Shown: positions 348 to 18,772 of the stretch, piece after piece
Numbering within the stretch: the first letter of the stretch is position 1
How the letters are laid out: each line of letters begins with the position of its first letter
Source: Ginkgo biloba
Taxonomy: Eukaryota > Plantae > Ginkgophyta
Length of the DNA: 18,772 nt
Direction of reading: 5' to 3'
Assembly: GCA_024626585.2 (NCBI GenBank)
Contig: JANKJI020000005.1
Location: 694,459 to 713,230 of the forward strand
Program-made: the position numbers and the translations under genes
The notes under the pieces: generated by a model
Seen by the model: the letters and a program-made list of their open reading frames with translations, nothing else
Told to the model about the DNA's origin: nothing
Databases searched by the model: none

Positions 348-452
348 TTTTGGTTGTGCTGGAGCCCAAGGCTGTAGCTTTTGCATTGTTTCATAAATGT
401 CCAAGAGTTGATGTTGAGAATTCGGATAGTCAGGTGTCTTAGTCACTATCCA
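348..452 (-). CDS. Patched-like gene, last visible exon (luminal loop 2, DYPN motif)
   Basis: attgtttgtAG | [35 protein letters not shown] | GTatgc; 105 nt, phase 0-0; resembles PTCH1 [20 protein letters not shown]. Confidence 0.88.
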
Positions 453-3400
453 CTACAAACAATCACAAGTTGAATCCAATTAAGTGTCAAGTGACCACCA
501 ATTATAGCATTTAAAAGATCTATAAGAAAGGTAACTGTATAATCTGCATAATGCTTACGATGTCATAAACTGGAAAACCATTCTCTGTCACGACTGCATA
601 ATCATGTTGATAAGATCCTGCCAAAATCCTCAAACACAAAATAAGTAAAATGATTACAACCATTATTTTGAATATTTGAGATCATATCAAAGAGAATGAA
701 CTATCCCAGTTGGTCAAAATATTAAAGAAAATCAACAATCTTTGTTATTGAATCTGAGTTATCTGGAACACAGCTTTAATATAAATAGACAACATTAGTC
801 ACATTTCAACTTACAATACAAATTTGTTTATGGGATGGGAGATGTCAATTCTATGCATTTGAATTAAAGATTTTTATGTTAGCTTATTTGTCTATGCTTC
901 ACTGAAGTCTTTTATATATCTTTTGGCCCACCTTCATGAAGCGAATTGTTATAATCTCAACTCCCAACTATTATTGGAGCATGCTCCTTTGTCATGCCGG
1001 TTCTTACTTGTGATCTTATAATTCATATCTTTTCTAGTTGTTTGACCTCCATGCTGAATCTGTTATCTGTCTATTGTTTTCCCTTTAATAATTATAATAC
1101 TGCTAGATACTTCATTCCCACTATCCAAGATCCATATATAGGTTAATATATAAACCAGAGAGAACTCACACACAATTTGTTGTTATTCAGTCTTAAAAGG
1201 GGAGGAGGATATCTCTTTTTTAGAAGAGGGGGCTAAGATAGATCATATATAATTAGGTCATAAACTAAAGAGAAGTTTGAAGATGATTCAAAACCTTTCA
1301 ATCATGGTATAAAAGTTTCTTATTGAACCCAAACTAAAATAAGAGTTCTTGAATCTTGGTTACTTGTGGAATCTTGGGATGGTCTTACTAGTACCTCTTA
1401 ATATGTTTGTGTAGTAGGTTATTAAGGAGATTCATATTGAGTATTTTGGATTGCTATGTTTTGATATGGTAAAATGTAACCTAGTTAAGAGGGAGTGTGC
1501 ATAAACCCTTGAAACATATATTATGGTATAAAAGGTTTTCCAAAGTAGTTATAGTTAACATAAGGATAAGTATGATAACTAAGTTAAACATAATATGGAT
1601 TATAGTATGGAATGTTCTAATATTGGGCAAAACCATATGCTATATATGAACTAGTTTATGTCCCATTTGTATGTAGAGGAAACATAGAAGGGGTATATTA
1701 GTAGTATATGGATTTGATTATACTCTTCAATGTGGAGGATTATTATCTTTTTTAGAACATTACGTAGGAATATGTTGTGTCCTATATTTAAGTGTGGAAG
1801 GTTGACTCCCTTAATAAGGAAGAAGCTATTATTAAATTGTAGGTGGATTGGTTTATCCTCTCTAAGGATTAGGTGGTGGGACTTTTTGACCCTCAGATAG
1901 AGGAGGTTGAATATTATGTTATGGATCTCTTGGTGGAACATCTTATGTACTTGAATTTTGGACANNNNNNNNNNNNNNNNNNNNNNNNNNNNNNNNNNNN
2001 NNNNNNNNNNNNNNNNNNNNNNNNNNNNNNNNNNNNNNNNNNNNNNNNNNNNNNNNNNNNNNNNCGATTTGACAAGGGATCTTGGCATATCCTCATTAGT
2101 AGATCTTTGGATGATGAGGAATTTTGGTCTTTGGTAAATTATGGTCTTTGAAGGGATGATGGTAATATATGGGTGAAGCGATTAGGCTCAATGGCTAGTT
2201 TGATTTTGGATTGCTGATTGAATAATTGAGGATCAGGCTAAGGGGCCAAATTTATTTATTGATGATTGATATGCCTCAATGGGTGGCATCTTTATATATT
2301 GAGGAGGATGAATGTTATTTAAACTTTGCAACCTTTCATCCTATAATAGTCATTACTTTTTTGATCTTCCAATCATGTCTTTTCAATATAGTTAGAACAA
2401 TAGCCACTAGTTTGTTTACCCTTGGGTTCTTTATTGTTCATTATCTCTTTGAAAAGTGGACAACTCCTTTGGTTGGAAGTATTACAAAAGTGATGCTGCA
2501 GGTGTGAATAATCTGAAATGTATTCTTTGACATAAAAAAGAACTGCATGACAGTTAACTAGCACCACCCATCACCACTCAAACTTATGGTTCATGTTGAA
2601 AGGTAAGCAAGTAATCACATTAGGAGGCACTGAGGTCTATAAAACTGAACATTAACATTTAGTTAACAATTCTAAAATGTCAAGGACCAATATATTATTT
2701 TGAGATTATTTTGTCAGTATGTTTAATTGTTTATTTTCAATCACTTTATCAGGACATTTCCTCTGAAGAGGCCATAAAGCTGCTCAACAGTCAGGAAGGA
2801 ATCAATCCTCCATTATTGAAGCTATCATGACATGCACTATGTATATGGAATTCTACAGATGGACATGAGCTCTATGATCTTGCCTATTCAATCCCCCAGA
2901 TGTTGACTGGTTTTTAATCAGATCATTATCAATGTAGAATATAGTTTTCCTTGAAAAATATATCTTTCCTTTGAAGAAACTGTATTTAAAATAATACTAC
3001 ATTGGATACCTTTCACTGTTACTTCGGAAATCTTCAACCCATGCTCAACCTTCGTCCCAAGATATATCATTGTTCCTAAAAGTCCAGCAAATATGATCAC
3101 CTGCAGGAACACCATAAACATTCTACTTGAGGTACTTTCTGGTGTGAAACTAGGTAACCTTTGGCCTTTTCAATACAATGGAGTTCAAATTGTCATCAGC
3201 AAAATTAAACTTGAAAATGTATTTGTAAATATACCACCAAATGTTGGAGTTGGCAATCAAAAGGAAAGCATACCACTCCAATTTTGAAAACGTTGCTATA
3301 GAACAATGGAGAGTAATAGTTTGCAACAAGTTTGGATAATAGAGAGCCTCCTGCGTGCCCTTCAACATCTTGATATGACCCAGGACTTTGCGCATCTGGG

Positions 3401-6400
3401 TTTCCTTTATTCTCTAATCCTGTTAGAATCATAGCATGATTTTAAGGTTGAGATAACTCACGCTTAAGAAAAATAATGTCATTTCTAAAAACTTCTGAGA
3501 TGCAGACAACTTTGATAAGCATGGAATATCATTTAGTGGTATTATTTTGTCATTTCATGCATGTATTTCATCCCAAAATAGTTCATGTTATTAGTCAATC
3601 TTTTCAGACACTGCAGCTTTTGCATAGTTCAATGAGATGAAACATGCACATGCCTGTATATAGATGCAAATATTTCCAAGTTGCAGGTGTTGAAGGATGA
3701 TGAGGAATCTGAACAATGTGTGTTGCAGGTTTGCAATGCATTAGAAAGACCTTTCTCCAATAAAAAAAAATTTTTAGCATTAAAAACATCAATTATAGTA
3801 CGAGTCTAAGAAACTTTATCACAAGCCATGATATCATACACAAATGTCTATTTGGTATATCTATTGTATGGAGAAATATTATTGAATATTATTTACAGTG
3901 AACACAGTATTTCCTTAATATTTAGACTATGATAGGTACCATTAAAGTACAAATTTATTTAAATTGCTTCAAAGCATTAAAATGTTTAGAGACAGTTAGG
4001 TGCTCACTACATTTACCCATCTCTATTTCTACGCATCATATCTGCATACCACATTGTACATTGTACAGCCTTTGGGATTATTTTAGCTTTATTTATTGAC
4101 ATTATTGTACTTTTATGTTTGATGTACTTAGGCAGGCATAGACTGGAGATGCTTTAGGCACTTGCCATGAGTCTAATACCATATGCAAGATTTTCGCATG
4201 TCCCGTTGATCGTTTTTGATGATCTATGGACTTCAATATAATATCTCTTTATCACTTTGATATGATAGAATCATAGAGTTAATGGCACATGGCATTTGAC
4301 TACTCATTGGGACATTGGCTTTGCCTAAATGGGGTGTACGCAAAATGTTCTGATAAAATAATCTTGGAACAACTGTTGAGGCAGATGAAGGAGTAAGAGC
4401 ACAATCCCATATGTTCGTTACTTGAACATTAATTCTTAATTTTGTGTTAAAACAATATGTTATGATATTATATGCCAAAGTTTACCATAAAGAAACATTC
4501 TTCAAGCAAGATAAAACATATGAATTAGTTTTCTTGAATTGTTGCTATTCCTCATCTTCGATAGTCACATCACTAAGCCAAATGTCACAAAATTTCTCAA
4601 CAAACTTTATCTTCTGCTCTATTGTGAATGATTGGTCCTTTGTCTTCTTAGTTTCACTTGATTCCCCCTATGTTGGATCCTTTATATCTTGCACTAAATC
4701 TCGAACCAATACTTCAATAATGTTTGCCGCAAAGGTAGGTTGCCACTGTTCATGATCGAACAATTCACACTCTTTTTTATCCAATCCAACTTCAAAGATT
4801 TTTCGTTGGTTTTCGTAATCTAACTGTGTCGATCGGGAAGAGATTCAGACCAACCAACTCGTGGAATGGAACCATCAGTTGTAATGTGGATTTTGGCTCC
4901 AACTTGCTATGTTTGAACTGCAGGTGTTATCAGCTAACAAAATATTGATTTTGCATGAGCAATTGACTCCTCGACTAGGGGGCTTTCCCCTTCTTTCATG
5001 TTCTCTCCTCGACTTCTTCTGATTGTCGCGAATCCATCCTTTGGCCATGAGGTGTAGTCGTCATTGGGCTACNNNNNNNNNNNNNNNNNNNNNNNNNNNN
5101 NNNNNNNNNNNNNNNNNNNNNNNNNNNNNNNNNNNNNNNNNNNNNNNNNNNNNNNNNNNNNNNNNNNNNNNNGCCTCTTAGAATTAGTACTTTGGACTTT
5201 GGAAAAAGCCAAAAGGCCTTTTTTTTTGTGGATTGCCTTGTTGCCAAAAAATTTTACACTTTGAGTAGAACTTCAAAGGCCATTAACTTAGTTCAAATTA
5301 CCTTTTATTAAATTTGGTCCAAGTGCATTGAATGTGCTTGTAAATGAGGACCTTAGCAATATATAATGGATGATTGGACACCAAGTAGAAGCTAGAGGCC
5401 AAGTTTTCATATCACTGCCTTTTTGGAACTAGGGTGAAAATCCAACATGTAGGAAGGAGGAAGGGAGCAAAATAGCTCAACATGTTAGAAGTAGAAAAAT
5501 TACAAAAGACAAGGGCATAATTGCAATAACTTAGCTAGAAGCCCTAGACTAAAGTTTGTTGACTTGGAAAAACACCAACTTATTGGAACTATCAAGGAAA
5601 GGGTAGGAAAACCAAATTAATAAGATTTCATATTACTTCAAAATCATTATTAAGCCTTCTTAATGCATTTATGTTCCAAGTTCAAGTCCGCCTCAAAATA
5701 ATAAATATTGTCCCTTGGATACAAGGGTATGGATGGTTGAATGCATAATAGGCTAGATGCTCATGCCTAAATGTTCTTGTCTATGCTTGTAAGAACCTAA
5801 TTGACCTTTGTGTATATCAACTAAGATGGATGGCTAATCCTTACGAAACACTATATCAAAGCACAGTAGCCAATTTGAGGGATGGAAGCAAGATGGGGAA
5901 TGGATTTTCAAATCCTCAATTAGCATCGGTCGATCCTAAATAACACTACCAAAGGAGGACATATTTATAAGGGTGGGATCACATATACATGATATGAGGG
6001 GAGGCCCAAAGAGAGATTTAAATAGGCATTTTTGGCTTTAATTCGTCATCATCATTTTCACCTTGCACTCAGTTATCGTGCTCCCCTCTTCTTATTTTTG
6101 TCATATCTTCTTTTACTCATCCTGAAAAGGACTTCAGTCTTCATTTTGAAGCCTCTAGAAGTTTTCTTGGTCCTAGAAATCCCCCAAGAAGAAGTTCAGC
6201 CTGTTACATGGCAATTTTGTTGCTGGAAATCATATTGGTCATCTAGGAGCAACCGAGTTTAGGCCAACAATGGTTTGGGATCGTTCCAAGCAAGGTTATC
6301 AGAGCTCATGGGTGTAGGCATGGGTTCAGGTGCAAGTGCTGCTTCGGGTTTGACATTTTGAAATTCCTAGTTCCAAGTGTAGGTGTGCAGTTATTTTTTT

Positions 6401-9400
6401 GGGGGGGAGTGATTGATGTGGATTTTCATTTGATGGTGTACAAGTTGCCACTAATGAACTATATCTATATCCAGTGTTTTAAATCTAACTTTTTGGAGTT
6501 TGAGACCTAAAATAAGTTTGTGACAATGGTTGAAGTTGAACTCATACCCAAAAACCTAACCCAGTTTACATACCAAGTTCAGGAACCCGCCTTATTGAGT
6601 GCTAGAATCTAATTACTCTAGTTCCAAGATTTTGACATGCTCCATTTAGCCTAAAACTACATGGAAACAGCCTAAAACAACTTGACATGTAGAGGAACTC
6701 TTTGGCCTATTGAATATGGTATTCTTGAATCTTCTTATTGCTTGATTGTTCTTTAAAATCAGTTTGGTTTTAGTCTTCTTTATGTGCATTTATGGCCAGT
6801 CTTTCTATGTGTACATCGACCAACGCTATTTCTAAGCACATAGACTCAGCATAAATACGAATTTACAGCCAAGACAATATTCTGACTTTTACTTTCAGTA
6901 GTACATATAGCATGAGAAACTATGGTAGCAATATACACGCAACAAGATAGCTTCTCACCTTAGTAGGGTATGTGTAGACCCTAACCACAAGTTGGAGAAG
7001 TGTGTTGGAACAATCTCTAAGCCTTTAGGATGCCGGTTATTCCTATTTTCTGTATGCACAAACAAATCTGGGCAGAGATTAAGACAAATTTTCTACACAA
7101 TGTACTCTGTTTCCACAATGTGCTCCTGTTCCACTCCAGCAAGTAGGATGAGTTTGAGGCAACAATTTCTAAGAAATAAAATAGAGATTTACCACTCCAA
7201 AATGTCAAGTAGAAATACACTGTTCTCTTTCTGTAGTATATGTATTCTTTATTCTGAATTCAGCTCCAATCAGCAAAATTCCAGAAAATTGGTTTGCTCA
7301 CAAAACTTGCCCTTCCGGTTCCGTCTAGAGTCCAAAATATCAAGTATTGAATATTTCTGGAAAAATGTTTCAGAGGGACATCTAATGGATTAGGTGTGCG
7401 CTCAATCAAAGGTCATTTGACTGAATTTGTCCTCCAAAGTGACTGCTTATGTTTGGCTCTGCAATTTCTAGTTTTTACCCCAAAAAATTGTTTATATTAA
7501 TTATTGGTTTTTGCTTCAGAAATCCATTTATATTCATTTCTGGATACCTGTTCCATGATGCAGTTTTCTGCATGTGCATACTGTTTATATTTCTAGAGAT
7601 TAGGATTGAGGCCTTCCTTATAGAGAGTTANNNNNNNNNNNNNNNNNNNNNNNNNNNNNNNNNNNNNNNNNNNNNNNNNNNNNNNNNNNNNNNNNNNNNN
7701 NNNNNNNNNNNNNNNNNNNNNNNNNNNNNNTGTAAACATGCTTTGTGACAGAGGTATACTACAATTGCAGCCAAGGCAGACAGTTCTCACGGCCGATGTA
7801 TACGATGATTACGATTGGTAGCCTGTAGGTAATGACCCATTGAACAAGATTGTTGTGGTTGATTATCTCTGTTATAACCAATCGATACTTCCGCAATTAA
7901 CTGTATACCTGTTGCAACCGATTATTCTTCTACTTTTGTGTATGAAATTTCAGGCATACATCCCACATTTTAGACAATGCCCCAAACATCTGTTGTGATT
8001 TTGGATTTCTTCTTGTTTTGTACTTTTCTCTATGGAGAATCCTATCCATCCTGACCTACGTGGATGTCAATGGGTTTGAGGTCTTGTGGTGGACTTATTG
8101 GGTATCAATGGGATTTACCAGCTCTGCTGAACATAACCATGATGCTTCCTTGCCTTTGACTAGTCTCATACCTCCTCTAATCTGTAGTGCAAAGCCACTT
8201 AGGTCTTGAGACAAGTTGGAGGGAACCTCAAGGTGGAGAACAAGCATCTGCATCCACCCCCAAGATACTTTTAGGTAAGGAAACAAATATTGTCATTTGT
8301 GAAGAGTAATATTCACATAAATAAGGACTTAACTCTTTTCTACTGCTTTTATGCATAACAACTTGTAATCTTACCCTTATGACATATGATAGAATTTTTT
8401 ACCATTGCTGCAGAAACAAAAGGGCCCCACTATTTGCCAACATGATTTTTTACAATGGAGTCTCTAAGGCTTTTATGCATATACCTTCAGTAAAGTCCAT
8501 GTGAACCATGACACCCATCAGCTTTGTATTTGAAAAAAATCTTCTTTGAGAACTCCATATGCTCAATAACCCTATTCTAGGAGTAAATTCACCAGGCAAC
8601 CCTGTTGGCATATAGATTTAAACAATAAATGTAAACATACTCGGCTAAAGTTGTACATTGTATAACAGTAACTTCATGGAAGCTCTACTGTTAGGAGTGG
8701 GGTTCTGTTTCACACTGTTTGGAATTCTTGTGTCATATTTGAAGTTAGCTTGACTGGAAATTAGTTTCACACTGCAAGTTTATTGATAATAATGTGCATG
8801 CAGCTTCCTTTGGTTACATATTGGGTATGTTGATGATATATTAAGAATGGGAGTTGTTAATGCCAAGACATCAAATAATATCAATTTCAAACACCTACAT
8901 AAAAGTTTATCTATTCTTTGTCCTGTTTAAGCATATAGTGCATTTTAATATATCTAAACAAAAATCTTGCACAAAATGACCTGTGAAGGAGCGTCGCTAA
9001 TTTCACGGTTCGTTTAATGGTGGTTAACCCATCTCAATTCTCACCTTTTTTTCTGCGTAACCCACAAAGTAGCCAAAGACATGGGTCAACAATACCAGCC
9101 TGCCGAACATGNNNNNNNNNNNNNNNNNNNNNNNNNNNNNNNNNNNNNNNNNNNNNNNNNNNNNNNNNNNNNNNNNNNNNNNNNNNNNNNNNNNNNNNNN
9201 NNTCTTGAAATTTTCTGAGCACAAGTAACTCTGATCTACCTTAACTCTTCGAGCATCGATGGACATGAGTGGGATGAAAATAAACAGCATGCCACACGTA
9301 TGAATAGACGCAGTAATACCCATTTGCCAGCAAAACCACCGGACGATAGGCATAGGATTCTACAGTGCAAAGCATGCGATTATTAACACAAGCCTGAAAA

Positions 9401-12400
9401 GGACTAGTTCTAGTTTTGTACTTGTGACAACCAGGATAAGCAAAAGTACACAGTTCTGTGTTGATACCAAGGAAGAAATAAAGAACGATGCCAGAATTGA
9501 GAATGTTGTAAGCACAAGTGAAGGTCCTGCTAGGGCTACAGTGAGTCTCATCTCTTTTTCAGGCACTGATGATGCAGCACTGTTCAAGTGTTCCAATTTT
9601 GGGTCCTTTAGGTAACTTCTCATTATGGTTGTAAGTACAAAAATGTCATCAATTCCTGCACACAACAATAGCTAGCATCTCAGTTTCCTGCACCAAACTT
9701 GCAGTCACAAAAGTTACAAATATAAGATTCGAAACACGATTGACATTTCCTGGTCAAATTTATACTTTGTGTCCCATTCAAGGTTCAAAGATCAAAGGTA
9801 ATGTCACTGTGGAAGAAGCACATTATTTCAAGGACTTGAAAGTGTACCTTGTTGTACTGACATTTTCTTCGAGAGTAATTTATTCATGTGTTTGCCAAGT
9901 TAAATCCTTTTGAAAAGCTCAGTTCTTACTCGCTATGAAATGTGTGTAACCACAAAGCAATGGAATTATTCTAAAGCGATCCTTTCTAAGGCAACATTGT
10001 GAAGTTTACTGTCATTAGTGGTGCACTGGATAACTACTCCTGCAAACTAAAGCTGATGTTTATATTATTAACATAACAGTGCAGCCTATGGTGTGACAAT
10101 ATTGTGATCTACATCCATTGGGCCAAAAAGATAAAATATACACAAGTCTCAAGGGTATCCATTGACTTACAAACTCAAAATTTGTCCCAAGACTTCAACA
10201 ACATCAATCTACTCCTTTGATGTGTGATAACTAAGGGGTTATCAAGATTGCCAAAAATCTCATATTTCATGCAAGGACAAAACATATAGAAGTGCATTAT
10301 CATTACATCTGGGAGAAAATTTAGTGTGGAGAGGTTGAATTAATTTACTATACATCAAAAGAGCAATTAGTTGCTTTGCTCACTAAGGCATTGAACAAGG
10401 ATAAATTNNNNNNNNNNNNNNNNNNNNNNNNNNNNNNNNNNNNNNNNNNNNNNNNNNNNNNNNNNNNNNNNNNNNNNNNNNNNNNNNNNNNNNNNNNNNN
10501 NNNNNNNAAGTTGATGCATCCATATGTTGTTCCAAAATTAGGACTATATATGTATCCTTATTAGAGTTCATATTAGATAACTCATGACTAGTGAAAAAAT
10601 TTATCCTTGATGTAGTGTCACCTGGGATTGGGATCTTTTTAGTCTTACACCTATTGCGATAAAACTATCTTCTTCATATCCTAGATTCCTCTTGTTTACC
10701 TTATTTATGTCACCTCTATAAATTCCCCTATTTTATTATCTTCCTTGNNNNNNNNNNNNNNNNNNNNNNNNNTGAAGACTTTAGTCTAACTGAGGTATTC
10801 TCATTAGTTTTGGTAGTAGCCATCCTAATTTTCTCCTTCAAAGATTTTAGAGGGAAAACACCTTAATGTCATTCAACTCCTTATATTTCTCAATATTTTG
10901 GGCTTGATCCCTTATTATATAAATTTTATTCTTCATATAATATATTCATACATTGATAAAAATTTTATAGAGATTGGATATATCTAGGAGCCACACTATG
11001 CCTTCTCTTTTACACTATCCAATTATAATCAATAGGATTTTTTAAGTCAATTTTTGGATCATTTGAATGAAAATAAGTCATTATAAATCATCTCATATGA
11101 CTAGGAAAAAATCCTTTAGGTTCATAACAACTATGATTCACCAAATCTAGTTGAAATCCTATTATATTTTTTGTAAAATATTTAATATGTCCCGTATTAA
11201 TGATAATTATGTCACCTAATTATAGAGGAAAGGTGTGGAAATAAATCTTGTTTGATTTATACACCAATATCTATTAAAATGAATAGATTTACCTATAAAT
11301 TTTATATAATATAGTCCTATAATCTATAAAATTTGGAATTTGATAGGTATTATCCTCAAAACTATATAGGAAAATGTGTAAAATTCTAATGTAAAATAAT
11401 TTACCTAGACCAAGTGTGAGAAAGGGTACAACTGAACCAGCCAGTGGCGTGAATTTTATTCCAAGTGCTGCTGTCAATCCAAAACCGGCCAAAATTGCAA
11501 GTGATACCACAACCATGCCCTGAAAATAAAGAACAAAGAGGTGAAAGAGAAAAACACCATGCTTTAATGAAGAAGCCATTGGTTTCCTCTTACAGACTTT
11601 TTAGATTCCTGTGTGTAACTGAACAAGACAAATTATCAATTTCGGATGTAAGTTTTAAAAGAAGCTATACATCTTCAATTGAGAGAAGAACTTCCATCAT
11701 GAGCTAAAAAGATATGTGCCAAAAAAGGGAAATAGAGACTCACCATAAGAACTAACATTGTATGAGAATGAATAGGATCTCTAATATTAATGAATGCAGT
11801 TACAGAATATATTGAAACAAGCAGAACACTCAGTACTAGCTCCCACCGAGGTGTGTGATTGGCATCTTTAATTACATCTTCTGCAGATTTCTGCAATGTT
11901 TAGTAAAATCATCAGTATAATGTGTAATTTACAAGGGAAGATAAGATTCACAATATATAGTCAGTCAAGATTTGTTAATAGGGATTATAATATATCAAGT
12001 TTGACAAGCAATTAATATACATCTTTGTTAACCATGGATAAGTATTCTTCTTCTCTCCTATTTTCCAGTCTAGATCTTGTAGACATATAAGTTTGACCCA
12101 CTCATATTGTACTCACCCACATGCTGAACTGGACTTGTAGATCTGAATTTCTCTCTCCAGTTCCAAATGTTGTTGTTGCCGTATTTTGCCGCAATGGATT
12201 CAGAGCTCTAACAAGATGATCTTCCCATTTTACACTATAGATTAAGATATCATCAAAGAAGATAAGGATGAATTTTTGGATTACTTTNNNNNNNNNNNNN
12301 NNNNNNNNNNNNNNNNNNNNNNNNNNNNNNNNNNNNNNNNNNNNNNNNNNNNNNNNNNNNNNNNNNNNNNNNNNNNNNNNNNNNNNNTTCCTGGTCTGTG

Positions 12401-13952
12401 ACATCTTTCAACATCTTTATGATTTCTTCTAACTTTTGTATTAGCTCTTGTGTCCATATAGTGCTTTGAATGGTGACATTTTTGTTGACATGTGGTGCCT
12501 CGTATTATACCACCATTTTGCTAGGTGATTGTTTATCTTCGGTGTAACATCGTAGGTATCCCTCAAGGCATTTATTAACTATTTCGGTTTGTCCGTCCGT
12601 CTGTGGATGATAAGTTGTGCTCATGTTAAATTTCATGCCTACTAACTAAAATTCTTCTTGTCAAAACTTACTCGTGAATCTTGAATCTCGGTCACATGTT
12701 ATTCTTTTAGGAAAGCCGTGATATTTGTATATTTGTTTCATGAATATTTCTGCTAATTGGGTTACCTTGAACTTTGTGCTTATTGGGATAAAGTGCCCGT
12801 AATTAGTTAATCAATCTACTATCACCCATATGTCATCTTTCCCTTATGATAATGGCAATCCTGATATGAAGTCCATTGAAATTTCTTCCCATATTTGTTG
12901 TGGCACATTCAAAGGTTGCAGTGTCCCTGGTGTTTCGACAATATTAGATTTTTGTCTTTGACACGTATCGCACTCGGCTACATGTTGTTCCACATTTTCC
13001 TTCATCCCCTTCCAGAAGAAGTTCCTTCTCATATTTGTATATGTCTTCTTGTTGCCTACATGTCCTGCGCTTGGAACGTTGTGCCCTTCATTCAATGCCC
13101 TTTTTACAAATTCACCTTCTTTACTAAGGGATATTCTATCTTTGTACATGATCATTCCATTTCTAATCTTCCATTTGTTATCTCTTTGGTTGTTGTTGAT
13201 ATCGTCCAGTAGCTTTACGGTGTCCTGGTTCTTACTATATTCCTCGAGGAGATTCTTTATCCATTTTGGTTTGATGGTTGTCATTGCATTGAATTCTACG
13301 TCTTCGTACTTGCGGGAGAGTGCATCTGCCACTATGTTTTCTTTTCCTTTCTTGTATATGATCTCGAAGTCAAATGCTTGAATTTTGTCCACCCACTTAC
13401 GTTGTTCATCCATTAGAGTCTCCTGTTTTAGTAGGTGTTTTAGGCTTTTATGGTCGGTTTCTACTTTGAATTTGCTTCCAAGTAGGTATTGCCTCCATTT
13501 TTCTAATGCGTGCATAATAGCTAGCATTTCCTTCTTGTAAGTTGATATTCTCTTCTTCCTGTCATTGAGTTTTCAACTTTCAAAGGCAATGGGCCTTCCT
13601 TCTTGCATAAGAACTGCCCCGATCCCTATTTTGAATGCATCACATGCTATTGTGAAGGCTTTTGAGAAATTTGGACTTGCTAATACTGGTGTGGTGGTTG
13701 ATGCCCTTTTTAGTTCTTCGAATGTTTTTTTTGCCTTTTCGTTCTAAGTGAATGCATCCTTTTTTGTTAGATCGATAAGTGGTGTTGCTATTGATGTGTA
13801 GTTTCTTACGAACTTCCTATAGAAAATGGTTAACACCAAGAATCCTCTTAGCATATTAATTTTCTTCATGCATTTACCTTTTTATTGATGTAATCAACCC
13901 ATAGTGGGTGGTTCTCATGGAAGTGATTTGTAATCCATCTTATAGCCCCTAC
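348..13952 (-). CDS. Partial multi-exon gene for a Patched-like sterol-sensing-domain RND membrane protein; join(complement 13878-13952, 11744-11890, 11405-11519, 9468-9655, 9240-9359, 9045-9099, 3274-3419, 3010-3100, 559-617, 348-452); 5' and 3' ends not in window
   Basis: Ten exons with canonical AG/GT borders and matching phases splice to 367 aa without a stop: [367 protein letters not shown]. This is collinear with human PTCH1 as recalled from memory ([67 protein letters not shown]). Confidence 0.88.
559..617 (-). CDS. Patched-like gene small exon (luminal loop 2); absent from the ORF track
   Basis: attttggcAG | (G)[19 protein letters not shown] | GTaagc; 59 nt, phase 1-0; bridges the flanking exons in frame and has the length expected from PTCH1 TREYDFIAAQFKYFSFYNM. 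Confidence 0.85.
1290..1545 (+). mobile_element. Possible decayed small LTR element (TRIM-like) internal region
   Basis: PBS-like tcaTGGTATAAAAG at 1305 (cf. tRNA-Met PBS TGGTATCAGAG), polypurine tract AAGAGGGAG followed by TGT at 1487-1498, and a second TGGTATAAAAG at 1524. Confidence 0.35.
3010..3100 (-). CDS. Patched-like gene exon (TM7 and start of luminal loop 2)
   Basis: gttcctgcAG | [31 protein letters not shown] | GTatcc; 91 nt, phase 0-1; resembles PTCH1 [29 protein letters not shown]. Confidence 0.9.
3274..3419 (-). CDS. Patched-like gene exon (cytoplasmic loop and pre-TM7 helix)
   Basis: attctaacAG | (G)LENKG...[24 protein letters not shown] | GTatgc; 146 nt, phase 1-0; resembles PTCH1 [21 protein letters not shown]. 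Confidence 0.88.
4130..4800 (-). pseudogene. Decayed reading frame of unknown, probably transposon, origin
   Basis: One frame reads about 200 codons with only scattered stops ([43 protein letters not shown]...[13 protein letters not shown]...). No family motif recognised and no splice link to the host gene. Confidence 0.35.
9045..9099 (-). CDS. Patched-like gene exon (post-SSD, Cys-containing juxtamembrane segment)
   Basis: gttcggcAG | [19 protein letters not shown] | GTgaga; 55 nt, phase 0-1; positionally equivalent to PTCH1 RRLDIFCCF. Confidence 0.8.
9240..9359 (-). CDS. Patched-like gene exon (SSD TM6)
   Basis: ttgcactgtAG | [14 protein letters not shown]...[13 protein letters not shown] | GTagat; 120 nt, phase 0-0; matches the SSD consensus P-x-x-R-x-F...D-x-R-R. 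Confidence 0.92.
9468..9655 (-). CDS. Patched-like gene exon (TM4 GxxxDD end, loop, TM5)
   Basis: ttgtgtgcAG | (G)IDDIFVL...[21 protein letters not shown] | GTatca; 188 nt, phase 1-0; completes GLGIDD and has the GPS motif typical of SSD TM5. Confidence 0.92.
10190..10407 (+). mobile_element. Degenerate Ty1/copia RNase H fragment
   Basis: [60 protein letters not shown] matches the copia RNase H motifs CDN, FH.RTKHI and Q.AD..TK.L; contains stops and runs into a gap. Confidence 0.92.
11405..11519 (-). CDS. Patched-like gene exon (SSD TM3 to start of TM4)
   Basis: tttattttcAG | [39 protein letters not shown] | GTaaat; 115 nt, phase 0-1; carries the SSD 'PFL' motif. Confidence 0.93.
11744..11890 (-). 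CDS. Patched-like gene exon (pre-SSD helix and TM2)
   Basis: aacattgcAG | KSAEDVIKD...[16 protein letters not shown]...SHTMLVLM | GTgagt; 147 nt, phase 0-0; resembles PTCH1 TLDDILK...SQGAVGLA. Confidence 0.88.
12200..12287 (-). mobile_element. Short Ty3/gypsy reverse-transcriptase fragment
   Basis: [21 protein letters not shown] contains the gypsy RT catalytic (Y/F)xDD motif; abuts an N gap. Confidence 0.85.
12388..13868 (-). mobile_element. Degenerate Ty3/gypsy LTR-retrotransposon pol fragment (RT C-terminus/connection, RNase H, integrase)
   Basis: Translation gives [28 protein letters not shown], then [51 protein letters not shown] (RNase H), then H-x5-GH...CDTCQR (integrase HHCC), [15 protein letters not shown] and [10 protein letters not shown] (DDE core). 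RT-RH-INT order is gypsy. Several in-frame stops; no LTR seen. Confidence 0.95.
13878..13952 (-). CDS. Patched-like gene, first visible exon (end of luminal loop 1)
   Basis: Acceptor ttattttactgcAG, donor aag|GTaaat; 75 nt, phase 0-0; [25 protein letters not shown] joins the next exon in frame. Little motif conservation, so support is mainly splice signals and frame. Confidence 0.72.
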
Positions 13953-14289
13953 CTGCAGTAAAATAAGGTTTTAAGACCTGTAGAATAGACAATGTCTAGT
14001 GTACAAATACCTAATTAACAACACTATAAACCAAAAGTTTATGTTGACCGTTTATTACTAGGAATGCATATATGAGGAAAATGTTACAAGCACAAAGTGC
14101 AAAAAGACACAGGCAGAAATCAGACTACCGAATACATAAATTTGATCAGAAATCACAAATCAGAAATTCACGTTGACCATACAAGTTCTTTATATGTTTA
14201 TTTTTTTAGGGGGGTGGGTTGGAGGGGGTGCTTGCAGGTTAAAAAACACAAATTTTAGAGGGTTTCTGGAGAAGACTGAGATGTATACA

Positions 14290-15604
14290 ATGTATATAAT
14301 GCAGAAAGCTGATGGCAACTTTGCTGGAAAATGCCTTAGGACAGCGGAAGAAGCCTTTTTGGAGTTCATTGGAACATCATTGAAGCTGCCCTGCCTTTTT
14401 CAAGCTTTTGGGATGTTGCATATACAATTAGATGATGCTGAAACTTCATCCTATCTATTTCCATCCAAGACTGGCTACAACAAGTTGAAAAAGGTTTTTG
14501 TGGGGAAACATGGGGTATAACTGATATTGCAGCCCAAGGAGAAGTCTTGGCTGGAAAATGGATAGTCCATTGTGCATAGGGACAGCCCCATGGCAAATCC
14601 TTGTTAGGCACAGGATTCTGACAGCAAAACATTGAATGGGAATCAAAGGACCATTTCATCTTTGTGATGTGCTAGCTGGCATATCTGCCTTCATACTCAC
14701 AGGATCTTAAGTTCTCAAGCAGTTGTGGAGGGCGTGGCAGATCATCTCTACTCAGTTACATTGGAATTTTGAAGGACAGAGAACTGGCTGGGATTTGGCT
14801 TCATGATGTATTTGGACCTTTTCTTTGTCCAAAGGAATGTTGGGCATGCTCCCCAATTTAGCAGGCAAAAGGCTATCAAGAAAAGGACTCTTCTCCTGGA
14901 AGGATCTTTGGGATCGGGAACGTCAGCAATGGTAGAACTGGACAATCCTGAGACGCACTTACAATTTGTCCTGTGTTGATAAGCCAGTTGCATTGGAGTT
15001 ATGTAAAGCTCTTCCATAGGACTGTCTCTTCAAGTTTCAATTTCCGGTTACTGGAATATATTGCAGGGATTGATGATGGAGCAACGACAAGACTTTTTAC
15101 TGTTATGATACTCGCTTCTTGTATCATGCAATTCGATGCGAGAGACCTGTTTCCCCTTGGCTTTATCTCAAGTGGGGAACTTGTGACCCGAAAGAGAGAT
15201 AGCAGAGGAGATTCCATAGTGTATGGAAGGCATAAGCATCATACAAACTTAAGATTCTGGGCTGGCTAGTGATACATCATAGTCTCGCCGTCAAAGATCA
15301 TTTGCATCAAATAGGGTTCACAGACCTGTACTTTGTTATATGTTGAAGGTTGAATCAATTTTACATGTATTCGGGCATTGTCCAATGGCTAGAACCTTGT
15401 GGGGCTGGATCCAGACCGAATATGCAGAATTGTTTGTAATGGCTCAAAGGTGGAAAGGAGTCTTTTTAGGTGACAATTGGATGATCAAAGATACTGGAAA
15501 AAATTTATGGGATACAATAAGGCTTACAGGCATCGCTTTCCTTTGGAAGCAAAGATGTAGTTTGGCATTCCAAGGAAGAAGCGAGGTCTTGCAGCTACAT
15601 GATT
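14290..15604 (+). mobile_element. Degenerate LINE (L1-type non-LTR retrotransposon) ORF2 C-terminal region with zf-RVT zinc finger
   Basis: Frameshifted pieces: FLWG-like segment, GITDIAAQGEVLAGKWIV...PWQIL, then VWKA*ASYKLKILGWLVIHHSLAVKDHLHQIG, ESILHVFGHCPMARTLW and LWKQRCSLAF (W..RN...F consensus). 5' boundary approximate; 3' end lost in the gap. Confidence 0.85.
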
Positions 15605-16275
15605 NNNNNNNNNNNNNNNNNNNNNNNNNNNNNNNNNNNNNNNNNNNNNNNNNNNNNNNNNNNNNNNNNNNNNNNNNNNNNNNNNNNNNNNNNNNNNNNN
15701 NNNNNNNNNNNNNNNNNNNNNNNNNNNNNNNNNNNNNNNNNNNNNNNNNNNNNNNNNNNNNNNNNNNNNNNNNNNNNNNNNNNNNNNNNNNNNNNNNNNN
15801 NNNNNNNNNNNNNNNNNNNNNNNNNNNNNNNNNNNNNNNNNNNNNNNNNNNNNNNNNNNNNNNNNNNNNNNNNNNNNNNNNNNNNNNNNNNNNNNNNNNN
15901 NNNNNNNNNNNNNNNNNNNNNNNNNNNNNNNNNNNNNNNNNNNNNNNNNNNNNNNNNNNNNNNNNNNNNNNNNNNNNNNNNNNNNNNNNNNNNNNNNNNN
16001 NNNNNNNNNNNNNNNNNNNNNNNNNNNNNNNNNNNNNNNNNNNNNNNNNNNNNNNNNNNNNNNNNNNNNNNNNNNNNNNNNNNNNNNNNNNNNNNNNNNN
16101 NNNNNNNNNNNNNNNNNNNNNNNNNNNNNNNNNNNNNNNNNNNNNNNNNNNNNNNNNNNNNNNNNNNNNNNNNNNNNNNNNNNNNNNNNNNNNNNNNNNN
16201 NNNNNNNNNNNNNNNNNNNNNNNNNNNNNNNNNNNNNNNNNNNNNNNNNNNNNNNNNNNNNNNNNNNNNNNNNNN
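15605..16275. other. Largest assembly gap; further gaps near 267, 1965, 5073, 7631, 9112, 10408, 10748, 12288 and 17523
   Basis: Runs of N; many are about 100 nt, suggesting gaps of unknown true size. Confidence 0.99.
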
Positions 16276-17409
16276 AAAAGTTCAACAAAACTTTGAGAGA
16301 TTCTTATTATTTATCATCTTCAAAAGTAAAGTTGACAATAGATGCAGGAAATGATGAGTAAAGATGATAATTGATGAATAATGAAGTATGGTTAAATGCC
16401 TTGTGATAAATTTCACCTATGACTGAAAATGAAATGTTGAGAATGTAATTGTCTCTGATTGAAGATAGATTATAAAGTGCTTATTGTAGAGAAGAAATGA
16501 GCATTATTTTTTTATCCTTATAACTCCTCAAGAAAGGAGAGAGTTTATTATTTCTATGCAGGTAGATTGCAGGATGAAAAATCTAAGTTTTGACCACTAG
16601 AAAAAGGTGGTAGATTGATCGTGAATGTTTGACAAGGATGAATGCTTGATTGAATTCAAAGGTTTGATGATTGAAAATAAAGCAGAGTATCAAGTAAAAG
16701 TAGAAATACTCAATAAGGATTGCAAAGCTCCAAAAAACCTAAACCAATATAAAGCACCAATGTTTGATGACAAGTGGAGGCCAAAACGAGTGAGGCAGTG
16801 TCTAGTTTAAAATCCCATTCCTCCATATTACCATGCCAATTGGTACACATATGGGAGGGTAGTTGTGTACTTACTAGAAATGTGTTTTGGACTCTTATTG
16901 CTTCGAATCCAACAAGAGTCTTTTACTAGAATTGACGAGTCCTCTTTGGGATTGAGGGGTGTTGAAGTGTCGTCTTATCATGGAATGATTGTCTCCTTGC
17001 ACTTTAAGTACAACCTTGGTGTTCTCACGAATCAACATTGTTTGATGCCACCTCCCAACAATGGAGGGAGGTTACACGGTGTGGAATTCCATTACTTACA
17101 TCATGTTTATTATGACCACCAAAATTCACATAAAGCAATATGAAGCTTACCAACTGGGTTTCCAACTCTTATTCTACTCCACCTAGTAGTTCTTATGTCT
17201 TGTTCAGCTCAACAAATCCTATCCTAGGGATTTTGCTCGAGTTGCTAGCAATTAGCTTGAATTTTCTTGAAATTGCTTCAACAATTTTAACACTTATCAA
17301 GTCTTCTTCAATATGGCCCTCTATCTTGTTTACACTTGTTTACAAGTTGATTGGAACCCAAAAATCAGCAACAAAAGTTTGGCAAAAACAGTAAAAAATA
17401 GTTAGTTAT

Positions 17410-17902
17410 CGTTTGTCGAATGATTGTGCACTATTTGCTGCAATTGTATATCATTCGTTGGCCCATTCGTTGCTGTTTGTCAAGGATAAAGACTCGTTCG
17501 CTAAACAATTAGTTAGTCCAATNNNNNNNNNNNNNNNNNNNNNNNNNNNNNNNNNNNNNNNNNNNNNNNNNNNNNNNNNNNNNNNNNNNNNNNNNNNNNN
17601 NNNNNNNNNNNNNNNNNNNNNNGTCTGACTGACTGCTTGGTATGTTATGTGCTTATAATTTATTATGTTATTTCATTACTAGATTTGTAAATCACTAACT
17701 TAGTGGTTGGGTTGAAAGACCAGACTATTACATTTAGGGGAGGGGGTAGATAGCATCTATTTTGTGGTTAGCCCCAACATTTTGTATAAGTCAAGAGTAA
17801 CTTTAAACAACTTAAGACATAGTGGGGCAATAAGACGTTGAAGGATGACTAACGAACGATAGTTGAACAATGCCCAAACATCCAAGAACCACTCGACAAA
17901 CG
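17410..17902. repeat. Imperfect inverted repeat with AACGA/TCGTT-type submotifs, possibly DNA-transposon subterminal sequence
   Basis: cgtttgtcgaatgatt (17410-17425) is the reverse complement of aaccactcgacaaacg (17887-17902) at 14/16 positions. The left arm is rich in tcgtt and the right arm in aacga. Confidence 0.4.
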
Positions 17903-18772
17903 TTTAACAAATTATGGATGGAAATGTTCATTTAGTTTGCATTTGTTATGAGTGGTAGTCATTGGGATTCGATACATCAATCGTCACCAATGACCCCCCA
18001 CCACCTTGTATAGAGTTTCCAACTAGCTATAGAGGGTCCCCCATCATTTTCATTGGTATGATCATCATTGTACTCATTGTCTGATCTTTGGATGATCCAC
18101 TTGTATCTTCATCCCACATATTAAACATATTAATGAGAATCTCTTGTTGCTATTGACTCCCAATGTCTTACTAATTTGTATGATCTATTTGGTATCTAGA
18201 ATGTTTTTGCAATCTCAATTTTATTCTAGATTCATAACTTCAAAATTTGTACTCAGCATCTAGCGTTGTTGTCAGCCCACACTGAACATAGGATTTCTCA
18301 ATCACGGGTGGTGACATTAGTTGTGATCGAGATTGGAAGAGAATATGAATTCGGTAGTTAGATCTGTGATTAGCATCACCATCCCCTCACATTAGCGGTG
18401 CAATGGATGACGAATTGACAAAGTTGATATTCACCTATGGTGGATCCGAATCGTTGTAGATTATGTTTTGGCCAAAGTGAACAACAACCAACAAACTATG
18501 TTCGAATTTGAAGGCAATTTCTTTAACAATAAAGTTGAATGAATTTTTTCCATGGTTCCAACTTTGTTGCCTCAACAAACATAAGAAATCGAAAGGAGAA
18601 GGATAATTGCACCAATGGCAGCCCGATTAAGTGAGGTGCAACTGCTCGAACAAACCTACATGTATGGCTAATGGTCAACAATCATTGTGCAATGTTCTTC
18701 ACCTCGCTTTCCACAATAACACACAAAAAGAGAACTCCAAACTTAGACAAATGCAAAGAGAACACAAGATAA

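Follow-up and report, generated by a model that had tools for sequence, protein, structure and literature searches.

The 18,772-nucleotide stretch of Ginkgo biloba DNA analysed here (contig JANKJI020000005.1; the window, meaning the whole of that stretch) probably holds exons, for profile positions ~372-794, of a gymnosperm gene belonging to an ancient streptophyte family whose products are Patched-like RND membrane proteins with a sterol-sensing domain. Patched is commonly regarded as having arisen in animals, in connection with Hedgehog signalling and with cilia. In a review it is described as confined to animals (PMC3495828). No paper describing the present family was retrieved from the literature, in agreement with an earlier note, made from the sequence alone, that had suggested a little-described lineage. 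Its proteins were, however, already in databases, from liverworts to a conifer and in Klebsormidium, and since they stand there under automatic names, what is gained is attention to them and one more sequence, from a gymnosperm, but no novel type of gene. The find is real but only moderately new, namely an expressed fragment of a gymnosperm gene from a family known to databases.

With this family, a Patched-like sterol-sensing transporter devoid of the NPC1 N-terminal domain turns out to be a gene that streptophytes have inherited vertically, with occurrences ranging from Klebsormidium to conifers. It represents a putative and unstudied plant lipid transporter with tractable models in Marchantia, Physcomitrium and Ceratopteris, and it gives studies of Hedgehog evolution an outgroup for Patched-type transport without Smoothened.

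Distribution and phylogeny of the family

Searches were made exon by exon, the exons being concatenated only for stop counts and to form a single row of the tree, in which X was placed at the unaccounted stretch between exons 1 and 2. When exon 5 (window 9468-9653) was used as a phmmer query against 1.84 billion representatives, ten matches below 1e-10 were obtained, including a 1126-residue protein of Riccia fluitans (P0005). By database searches and cluster look-ups, members were found in liverworts (Riccia, KAL2613615.1, P0005; Marchantia; Calypogeia), mosses (Ceratodon, Physcomitrium, Sphagnum), lycophytes (Diphasiastrum, and Selaginella moellendorffii as 'protein patched homolog 2 isoform X1', P0018), ferns (Ceratopteris, Adiantum), the conifer Cryptomeria japonica (LOC131056772, P0042, 860 residues, uncharacterised) and the streptophyte alga Klebsormidium nitens ('putative Patched family protein', P0044). 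Annotation of the family throughout land plants, which the earlier note had counted against its own reading, exists in part, through such automatic names; among the returned matches no flowering-plant protein belonged to the family, the only ones from flowering plants being NPC1 proteins with NPC1_N.

The protein nearest to the window gene is that of Cryptomeria, with 80% identity over 396 columns, and all 11 exons match, in order, a family profile built from full-length members (E 1.8e-28 to 0.0016). In the phylogenetic tree, the window, Cryptomeria and P0001, the protein of an environmental transcript (L001) described below, form a clade with support 100, a placement that bears out the view of the host as a land plant and points to a seed plant close to conifers. 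This gymnosperm clade, nested among euphyllophytes, groups with ferns (84 in the Shimodaira-Hasegawa-like approximate likelihood ratio test, SH-aLRT), the fork below that node being unresolved, while bryophytes are monophyletic and Klebsormidium lies outside. Among the three gymnosperm rows, the window has the shortest end branch (0.10). The tree shows vertical inheritance that begins in streptophyte algae and continues through bryophytes, lycophytes and ferns into gymnosperms; judged from the searches, the gene was probably lost in flowering plants.

With Patched being best known from animals, it might be suspected that animal or other foreign DNA contaminates a plant scaffold, or that the gene was acquired recently by horizontal transfer, and one echinoderm leucine-rich repeat protein was matched at 37% identity, a match judged spurious. 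On the contrary, the tree follows plant phylogeny with a conifer protein as nearest relative, plant-type Ty3/gypsy and long interspersed nuclear element (LINE) remnants occur in and near the gene, and the stretch is present in twenty sequencing runs from eight studies, under two species labels. On account of the tree mirroring plant phylogeny and of those runs, contamination is excluded, the chance left to this whole class of explanations being practically nil, and the scaffold is neither animal nor contaminant.

Beyond land plants and Klebsormidium, a JGI metagenome contig of 48,976 nt encodes a 1102-residue 'predicted RND superfamily exporter' of eukaryotic origin (P0045), which branches just outside them with support 98. 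It may represent the family in another algal group.

A Patched-like architecture distinct from NPC1

Because the window holds ~37% of the gene, architecture was deduced from the orthologous streptophyte proteins, which have in common with the window the sterol-sensing domain (SSD) and the GxxxDD motif. Full-length members carry PF12349 and PF02460, start with the first transmembrane helix (TM1), and contain neither NPC1_N (PF16414) nor PF22314, both of which are found in all NPC1 matches except for a fragment (P0050) without PF16414. In four plant members the Patched model TIGR00918 scored above the NPC1 model TIGR00917, with 240/200, 223/136, 231/214 (Selaginella) and 223/166 bits, respectively, whereas a true plant NPC1 (P0023, Oldenlandia) reached 1524 bits on TIGR00917. 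Upon phmmer searches of the PDB, PTCH1 exceeded NPC1 with both the Riccia (175 vs 146 bits) and the Cryptomeria (162 vs 108 bits) proteins, no match to Dispatched being returned at E 0.001, and the next non-plant matches of the Cryptomeria protein were dipteran Patched.

Comparison of folds gave a similar ranking. With the AlphaFold2 model of the Riccia orthologue (predicted local distance difference test 79, predicted template modelling score 0.73), the ten best Foldseek matches were all PTCH1 (E 4e-36 to 5e-32), followed by NPC1L1 and NPC1 (1e-31 to 1e-28), by NCR1, and by Dispatched (1e-16, rank 36 and below); Dispatched, HpnN and MmpL have the RND fold in common with the family, but at E values of 1e-16 to 1e-14, and none of the three was matched by sequence at E 0.001. 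Animal Patched (PTCH1, Drosophila Ptc) is, therefore, by sequence and fold the best solved-structure match. It shares with the family the 12-helix RND fold, two extracytosolic domains and the absence of the N-terminal NPC1 domain, and the Asp-Asp pair of TM4 and the Glu of TM10 are kept in both. Among 28 family members, D540 and E1002 (the TM10 Glu, beyond the window) are invariant, and D539 nearly so. The two groups differ, on the other hand, in showing only ~18-25% identity and in the long cytosolic C-terminal tail of animal Patched, which the plant family does not have.

At the level of single exons, the three motifs that the earlier note had listed as PTCH-like fared differently. IVT..DYPN.QH.L.D, a domain-2 motif common to vertebrate PTCH1 and exon 11, holds on its own, exon 11 matching only PTCH1 chains in the PDB (best E 0.045, 13/24 identical). 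Conversely, the exon with YYSPLF (exon 8) retrieved nothing but noise from the PDB and GLKISEV was not borne out alone; exon 5 by itself also gave no PDB match.

Several observations weigh against the assignment to a Patched-like family. Both TIGRFAM scores are far under their cut-offs (1120 for TIGR00918, 1016 for TIGR00917), and the margin of Patched over NPC1 is modest, ~17 to 88 bits. Summed over the window exons, insect Patched and NPC1 obtain 217 and 231 bits, so scores at exon level do not separate them. Language-model features give PTR and PTCHD clusters as nearest neighbours, along with Patched ones in equal measure. The tree comes from a quick search under LG+G4, shows long branches and was built from a set without PTCHD/PTR, Dispatched and SCAP. 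The N-terminal exons, which would decide on the NPC1 N-domain, and TM8-12 lie outside the window, and splicing exon 1 directly to exon 2 would break the reading frame. Finally, the Cryptomeria protein begins with 38 residues unrelated to the family, located just before the equivalent of exon 1, so that its model contains neither TM1 nor the greater part of extracellular domain 1; either the gene model is incomplete, owing to a huge intron, or the N-terminus is genuinely truncated, a trait that gymnosperms would then have in common.

Some of these points would also suit a plant NPC1 homologue, the usual sense of 'Patched family protein' in plant annotation (P0023 and P0024 in flowering plants). 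NPC1, NPC1L1 and NCR1 belong to the same superfamily, with the SSD and overall fold in common, and NPC1/NPC1L1 are strong second-rank matches in sequence and fold; the small margin of Selaginella and the lack of separation by exon go in the same direction. Nonetheless, family members obtain 136-214 bits on TIGR00917 in comparison with 1524 for true plant NPC1, none carries PF16414 or PF22314, exon 11 matches PTCH1 only, and in the tree a branch with support 98 leaves the family and NPC1 on opposite sides. An NPC1 homologue is, hence, extremely improbable, and the distinction drawn by the earlier note, Patched-type and not NPC1-type, is upheld by the domain content of the orthologues, the TIGRFAM ranking and the PDB matches as well as by the tree.

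By its sequence, the gene is thus Patched-like, neither NPC1 nor a canonical PTCH orthologue. The claim made is limited to 'Patched-like, not NPC1' and does not extend to 'PTCH orthologue'. PTCHD1/3, nematode PTR and the oomycete protein PsPTL (PMC8530017) resemble the family in having SSD and Patched domains, no NPC1 N-domain and a place outside the Hedgehog pathway. Knock-out of a Phytophthora Patched-like protein produced no phenotype (PMC8530017).

Exon structure, transcription and selection

The window has 36% G+C and ten runs of N. Its minus strand contains 11 exons from 13952 to 348 (Table 1), every one bordered AG..GT in agreement with GT..AG introns. They were placed by tblastn with the Riccia protein P0005 and later relatives, together with a profile (hidden Markov model, HMM) of 28 full-length members, and correspond to positions 372-794 of a sterol-sensing RND protein of ~1130 residues, that is, to the middle third of the gene, from the end of extracellular domain 1 through TM2-6 (SSD), the cytosolic loop and TM7 to the start of extracellular domain 2. 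Exon 1 aligns by tblastn with residues 374-401 of Riccia P0005 and 39-67 of Cryptomeria P0042. Zero stops are found in the 381 codons of exons 2-11 once joined, nor in the 406 codons of all exons together. The ten-exon, 367-residue product of the earlier note corresponds to exon 1 plus exons 3-11 (1101 nt), which is indeed stop-free, but it leaves out exon 2 (12234-12117), which is transcribed. Intactness of the gene, as stated in that note, is not supported either, given that the window covers about a third of it, that a transcribed exon was skipped and that the junction between exons 1 and 2 is broken by retroelement sequence.

On single exons, Pfam (PF12349/PF02460) recognised exons 4, 5 and 6 with E values of 2.2e-05, 2.4e-04 and 1.8e-03, exon 4 alone passing the cut-off (24.8 bits, PF12349); full-length orthologues reach 1e-23. 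The GxxxDD motif of TM4 reads GLG|IDD in the window and is divided between exons 4 and 5. Neither tblastn nor the family profile detected in the window any exon for the first 371 or the last 330 profile positions, so that the gene extends past both window ends.

All the N runs are intronic, that at 12288-12387 included, and the gap at 267-336 begins 12 nt past the donor of exon 11. Because no run touches an exon, continuity of the frame rests on splice phases and not on gaps. Exons 4-5-6-7 and 9 occur joined in the same order in L001, a spliced relative transcript that spans the gaps of introns 4-5 and 7-8, and the Cryptomeria protein, which is colinear with the exons, extends across intron 9-10.

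RNA reads show that the gene is transcribed, and that splicing takes place at the GT..AG sites expected from the exon model. One polyA RNA run contained 18 reads, all at least 99% alike and confined to exons, and four intron-skipping joints were recorded (exons 2-3, 3-4, 5-6 and 6-7), the skipped parts ending CT..AC on the plus strand, equivalent to GT..AG on the minus one. The joint between exons 6 and 7 crosses the N gap 9112-9202, while that between exons 2 and 3 is present in at least three polyA reads, with read depth ending by 12240; exon 1 lay outside the span used for mapping. The level of expression is low, as the 18 reads came from 7.8 million records, and three other very large RNA runs gave 0-2 reads.

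The gene is under purifying selection, with a ratio of nonsynonymous to synonymous substitution rates (dN/dS) of 0.11 and a dS of 0.66 over 186 codons relative to L001. This is a cDNA-like environmental contig of 1098 nt (JGI sample 3300037849) with the JGI name 'patched 1/patched 2', which shows 80-88% nucleotide identity to exons 4-7 and 9, no introns between them, and intron-like sequence at both its ends. It may belong to a paralogue or to a distant gymnosperm, a dS of 0.66 being large for one gymnosperm gene.

Table 1. Exons of the Patched-like gene and retroelement pieces between exons 1 and 2, in minus-strand order (coordinates are window positions).
Feature	Position	Strand	Content and evidence
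Exon 1	13878..13952	-	75 nt; end of extracellular domain 1, profile 372-399; family HMM E 2.9e-09; AG/GT borders
Degraded Ty3/gypsy (reverse transcriptase C-terminus, RNase H, integrase)	12444..13877	-	coding remnant from ~13866; Pfam RT_RNaseH, RT_RNaseH_2, Integrase_H2C2, rve
Reverse transcriptase YxDD box FFDDILIYS	12235..12287	-	53 nt abutting exon 2 acceptor, after N gap 12288-12387; Pfam RVT_1 E 0.045, profile 146-177
Exon 2	12117..12234	-	118 nt; family HMM E 2.9e-10; 69% identical to Cryptomeria; RNA joint 11890|12117
Exon 3	11744..11890	-	TM2, SSD start; HMM E 7.5e-20; RNA joints on both sides
Exon 4	11405..11519	-	TM3 and first half of TM4, ends ...PFLTLGLG; Pfam Sterol-sensing E 2.2e-05; HMM E 6.9e-19; RNA joint 11518|11743
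Exon 5	9468..9655	-	IDDIF..., DD of TM4 GxxxDD, TM5; Pfam Patched SSD; HMM E 1.8e-28; RNA joint 9359|9468
Exon 6	9240..9359	-	TM6, SSD end; Pfam Sterol-sensing; HMM E 1e-23; RNA joints on both sides
Exon 7	9045..9099	-	start of cytosolic loop; HMM E 0.0016; RNA joint 9098|9239; L001 451-510
Exon 8	3274..3419	-	cytosolic loop and TM7 start; HMM E 2.7e-08; tblastn P0001 and P0042; splice phases fit
Exon 9	3010..3100	-	TM7, entry to extracellular domain 2, GLKISEV; HMM E 1.8e-09; 90% identical to Cryptomeria; L001 683-779
Exon 10	559..617	-	extracellular domain 2; HMM E 1.4e-06; 19/19 identical to Cryptomeria
Exon 11	348..452	-	extracellular domain 2; HMM E 2.6e-08; sole PDB matches are PTCH1 chains

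Retroelement sequence between exons 1 and 2

Relatives carry ~12-13 extra conserved residues between the equivalents of exons 1 and 2 (...EKVNASYTEDQRKDLIIKWED... in Cryptomeria), a segment conserved in all of them and replaced by retroelement sequence in the window. Exon 1 ends there as AAG|GTAAATGCA TGA, and the nine bases past its donor (13877-13869) still encode V-N-A, as in the continuous exon of Cryptomeria; a stop follows, and then Ty3/gypsy sequence. The larger retroelement piece (~1.4 kb), with at least three stops and one frameshift, fills most of what would be intron 1. The pieces are permuted, as the part with the YxDD box belongs upstream of the piece starting at 13866 in an intact element, an order that could result from integration of a circular element, or from a nested insertion plus a deletion. 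An ancestral single exon appears to have been split by a rearrangement associated with the retroelement.

The missing codons were not found in 12235-13877, either by pattern or with the family profile. The string 'ILGVN' was considered as the missing segment and discarded as a chance match in another frame of the retroelement. When plasmids were searched by tblastn with the retroelement piece, a Wolbachia RNase H was matched, which gave no useful information.

As the region between exons 1 and 2 is interrupted by the retroelement pieces, this copy may or may not give a full-length protein. The copy could be transcribed but defective, the rearrangement having removed ~12 codons, with frameshifted or N-terminally truncated mRNAs and a functional paralogue elsewhere. 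The out-of-frame direct junction, the V-N-A codons running into a stop and Ty3/gypsy sequence, the failure to locate the segment and the low expression are all consistent with this possibility. On the contrary, the exons are free of stops along their 406 codons while the adjoining retroelement sequence has accumulated its stops and frameshift in ~1.4 kb, the end branch of the window is the shortest in the gymnosperm clade, dN/dS is 0.11, and the missing piece could sit within the N gap 12288-12387, in which case a micro-exon of ~41 nt located there might restore the frame in the mRNA, as might a different 5' exon. Taken together, a defective copy is regarded as possible but rather unlikely.

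Putative function and wider hypotheses

By analogy with PTCH1 and NPC1, on which structural work is established, and considering the fold and the conserved residues, the family is predicted to carry out cation-driven movement of a sterol-like lipid. The 12-helix transporter would use a cation gradient via the TM4 Asp-Asp pair and the TM10 Glu, and sterol or another membrane lipid would be moved, in the manner of PTCH1 and NPC1, between the bilayer and the two domains on the extracytosolic side. Such transport would be independent of Hedgehog or Smoothened. Plants are not known to have Smoothened or a Hedge-domain ligand.

The earlier note had suggested, as a speculation, that the gene is retained where sperm are flagellated, since PTCH1 of animals is ciliary. 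Bryophytes, lycophytes, ferns and Klebsormidium, which have the gene, all make flagellated cells, and flowering plants are without both. Sperm flagella were lost, however, in conifers, gnetophytes and flowering plants (10.1101/2021.07.25.453666), and the conifer Cryptomeria japonica, with no motile sperm, nonetheless has the gene; in addition, the window gene is expressed in a polyA library, its tissue unstated. On account of Cryptomeria, the suggestion is regarded as very improbable.

Secreted Hog-domain proteins are reported in Physcomitrella and Selaginella, and not in Arabidopsis or other higher plants (Burglin 2008, PMC2362128). This pattern resembles that of the family, and is used here only for a speculative proposal: the Patched-like transporter of plants might form, together with these secreted proteins with a Hog/Hint domain, the two halves of an ancestral sterol-linked ligand/transporter module, older than animal Hedgehog signalling, kept in streptophytes up to gymnosperms and lost in flowering plants. 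The proposal is a long shot.

Other features of the window

Upstream of exon 1 (13953-18772), no exons were found by tblastn or with the family profile. Three weak colinear tblastn matches to residues 283-354 of Calypogeia P0014 at 16774-17099 (minus strand), including 'CLTRFGLH' against PCCLTWFG in the family, were considered as upstream exons and set aside, being unsupported by the family profile and probably due to chance. An Rfam scan of the window gave no matches. An open reading frame at 15340-15603 (plus strand), interrupted by the N gap 15605-16275, shows a weak match to zf-RVT (E 0.035), a domain that reverse transcriptases of plant LINEs typically carry at their C-terminus, and probably represents what is left of a LINE on the upstream side of the gene.

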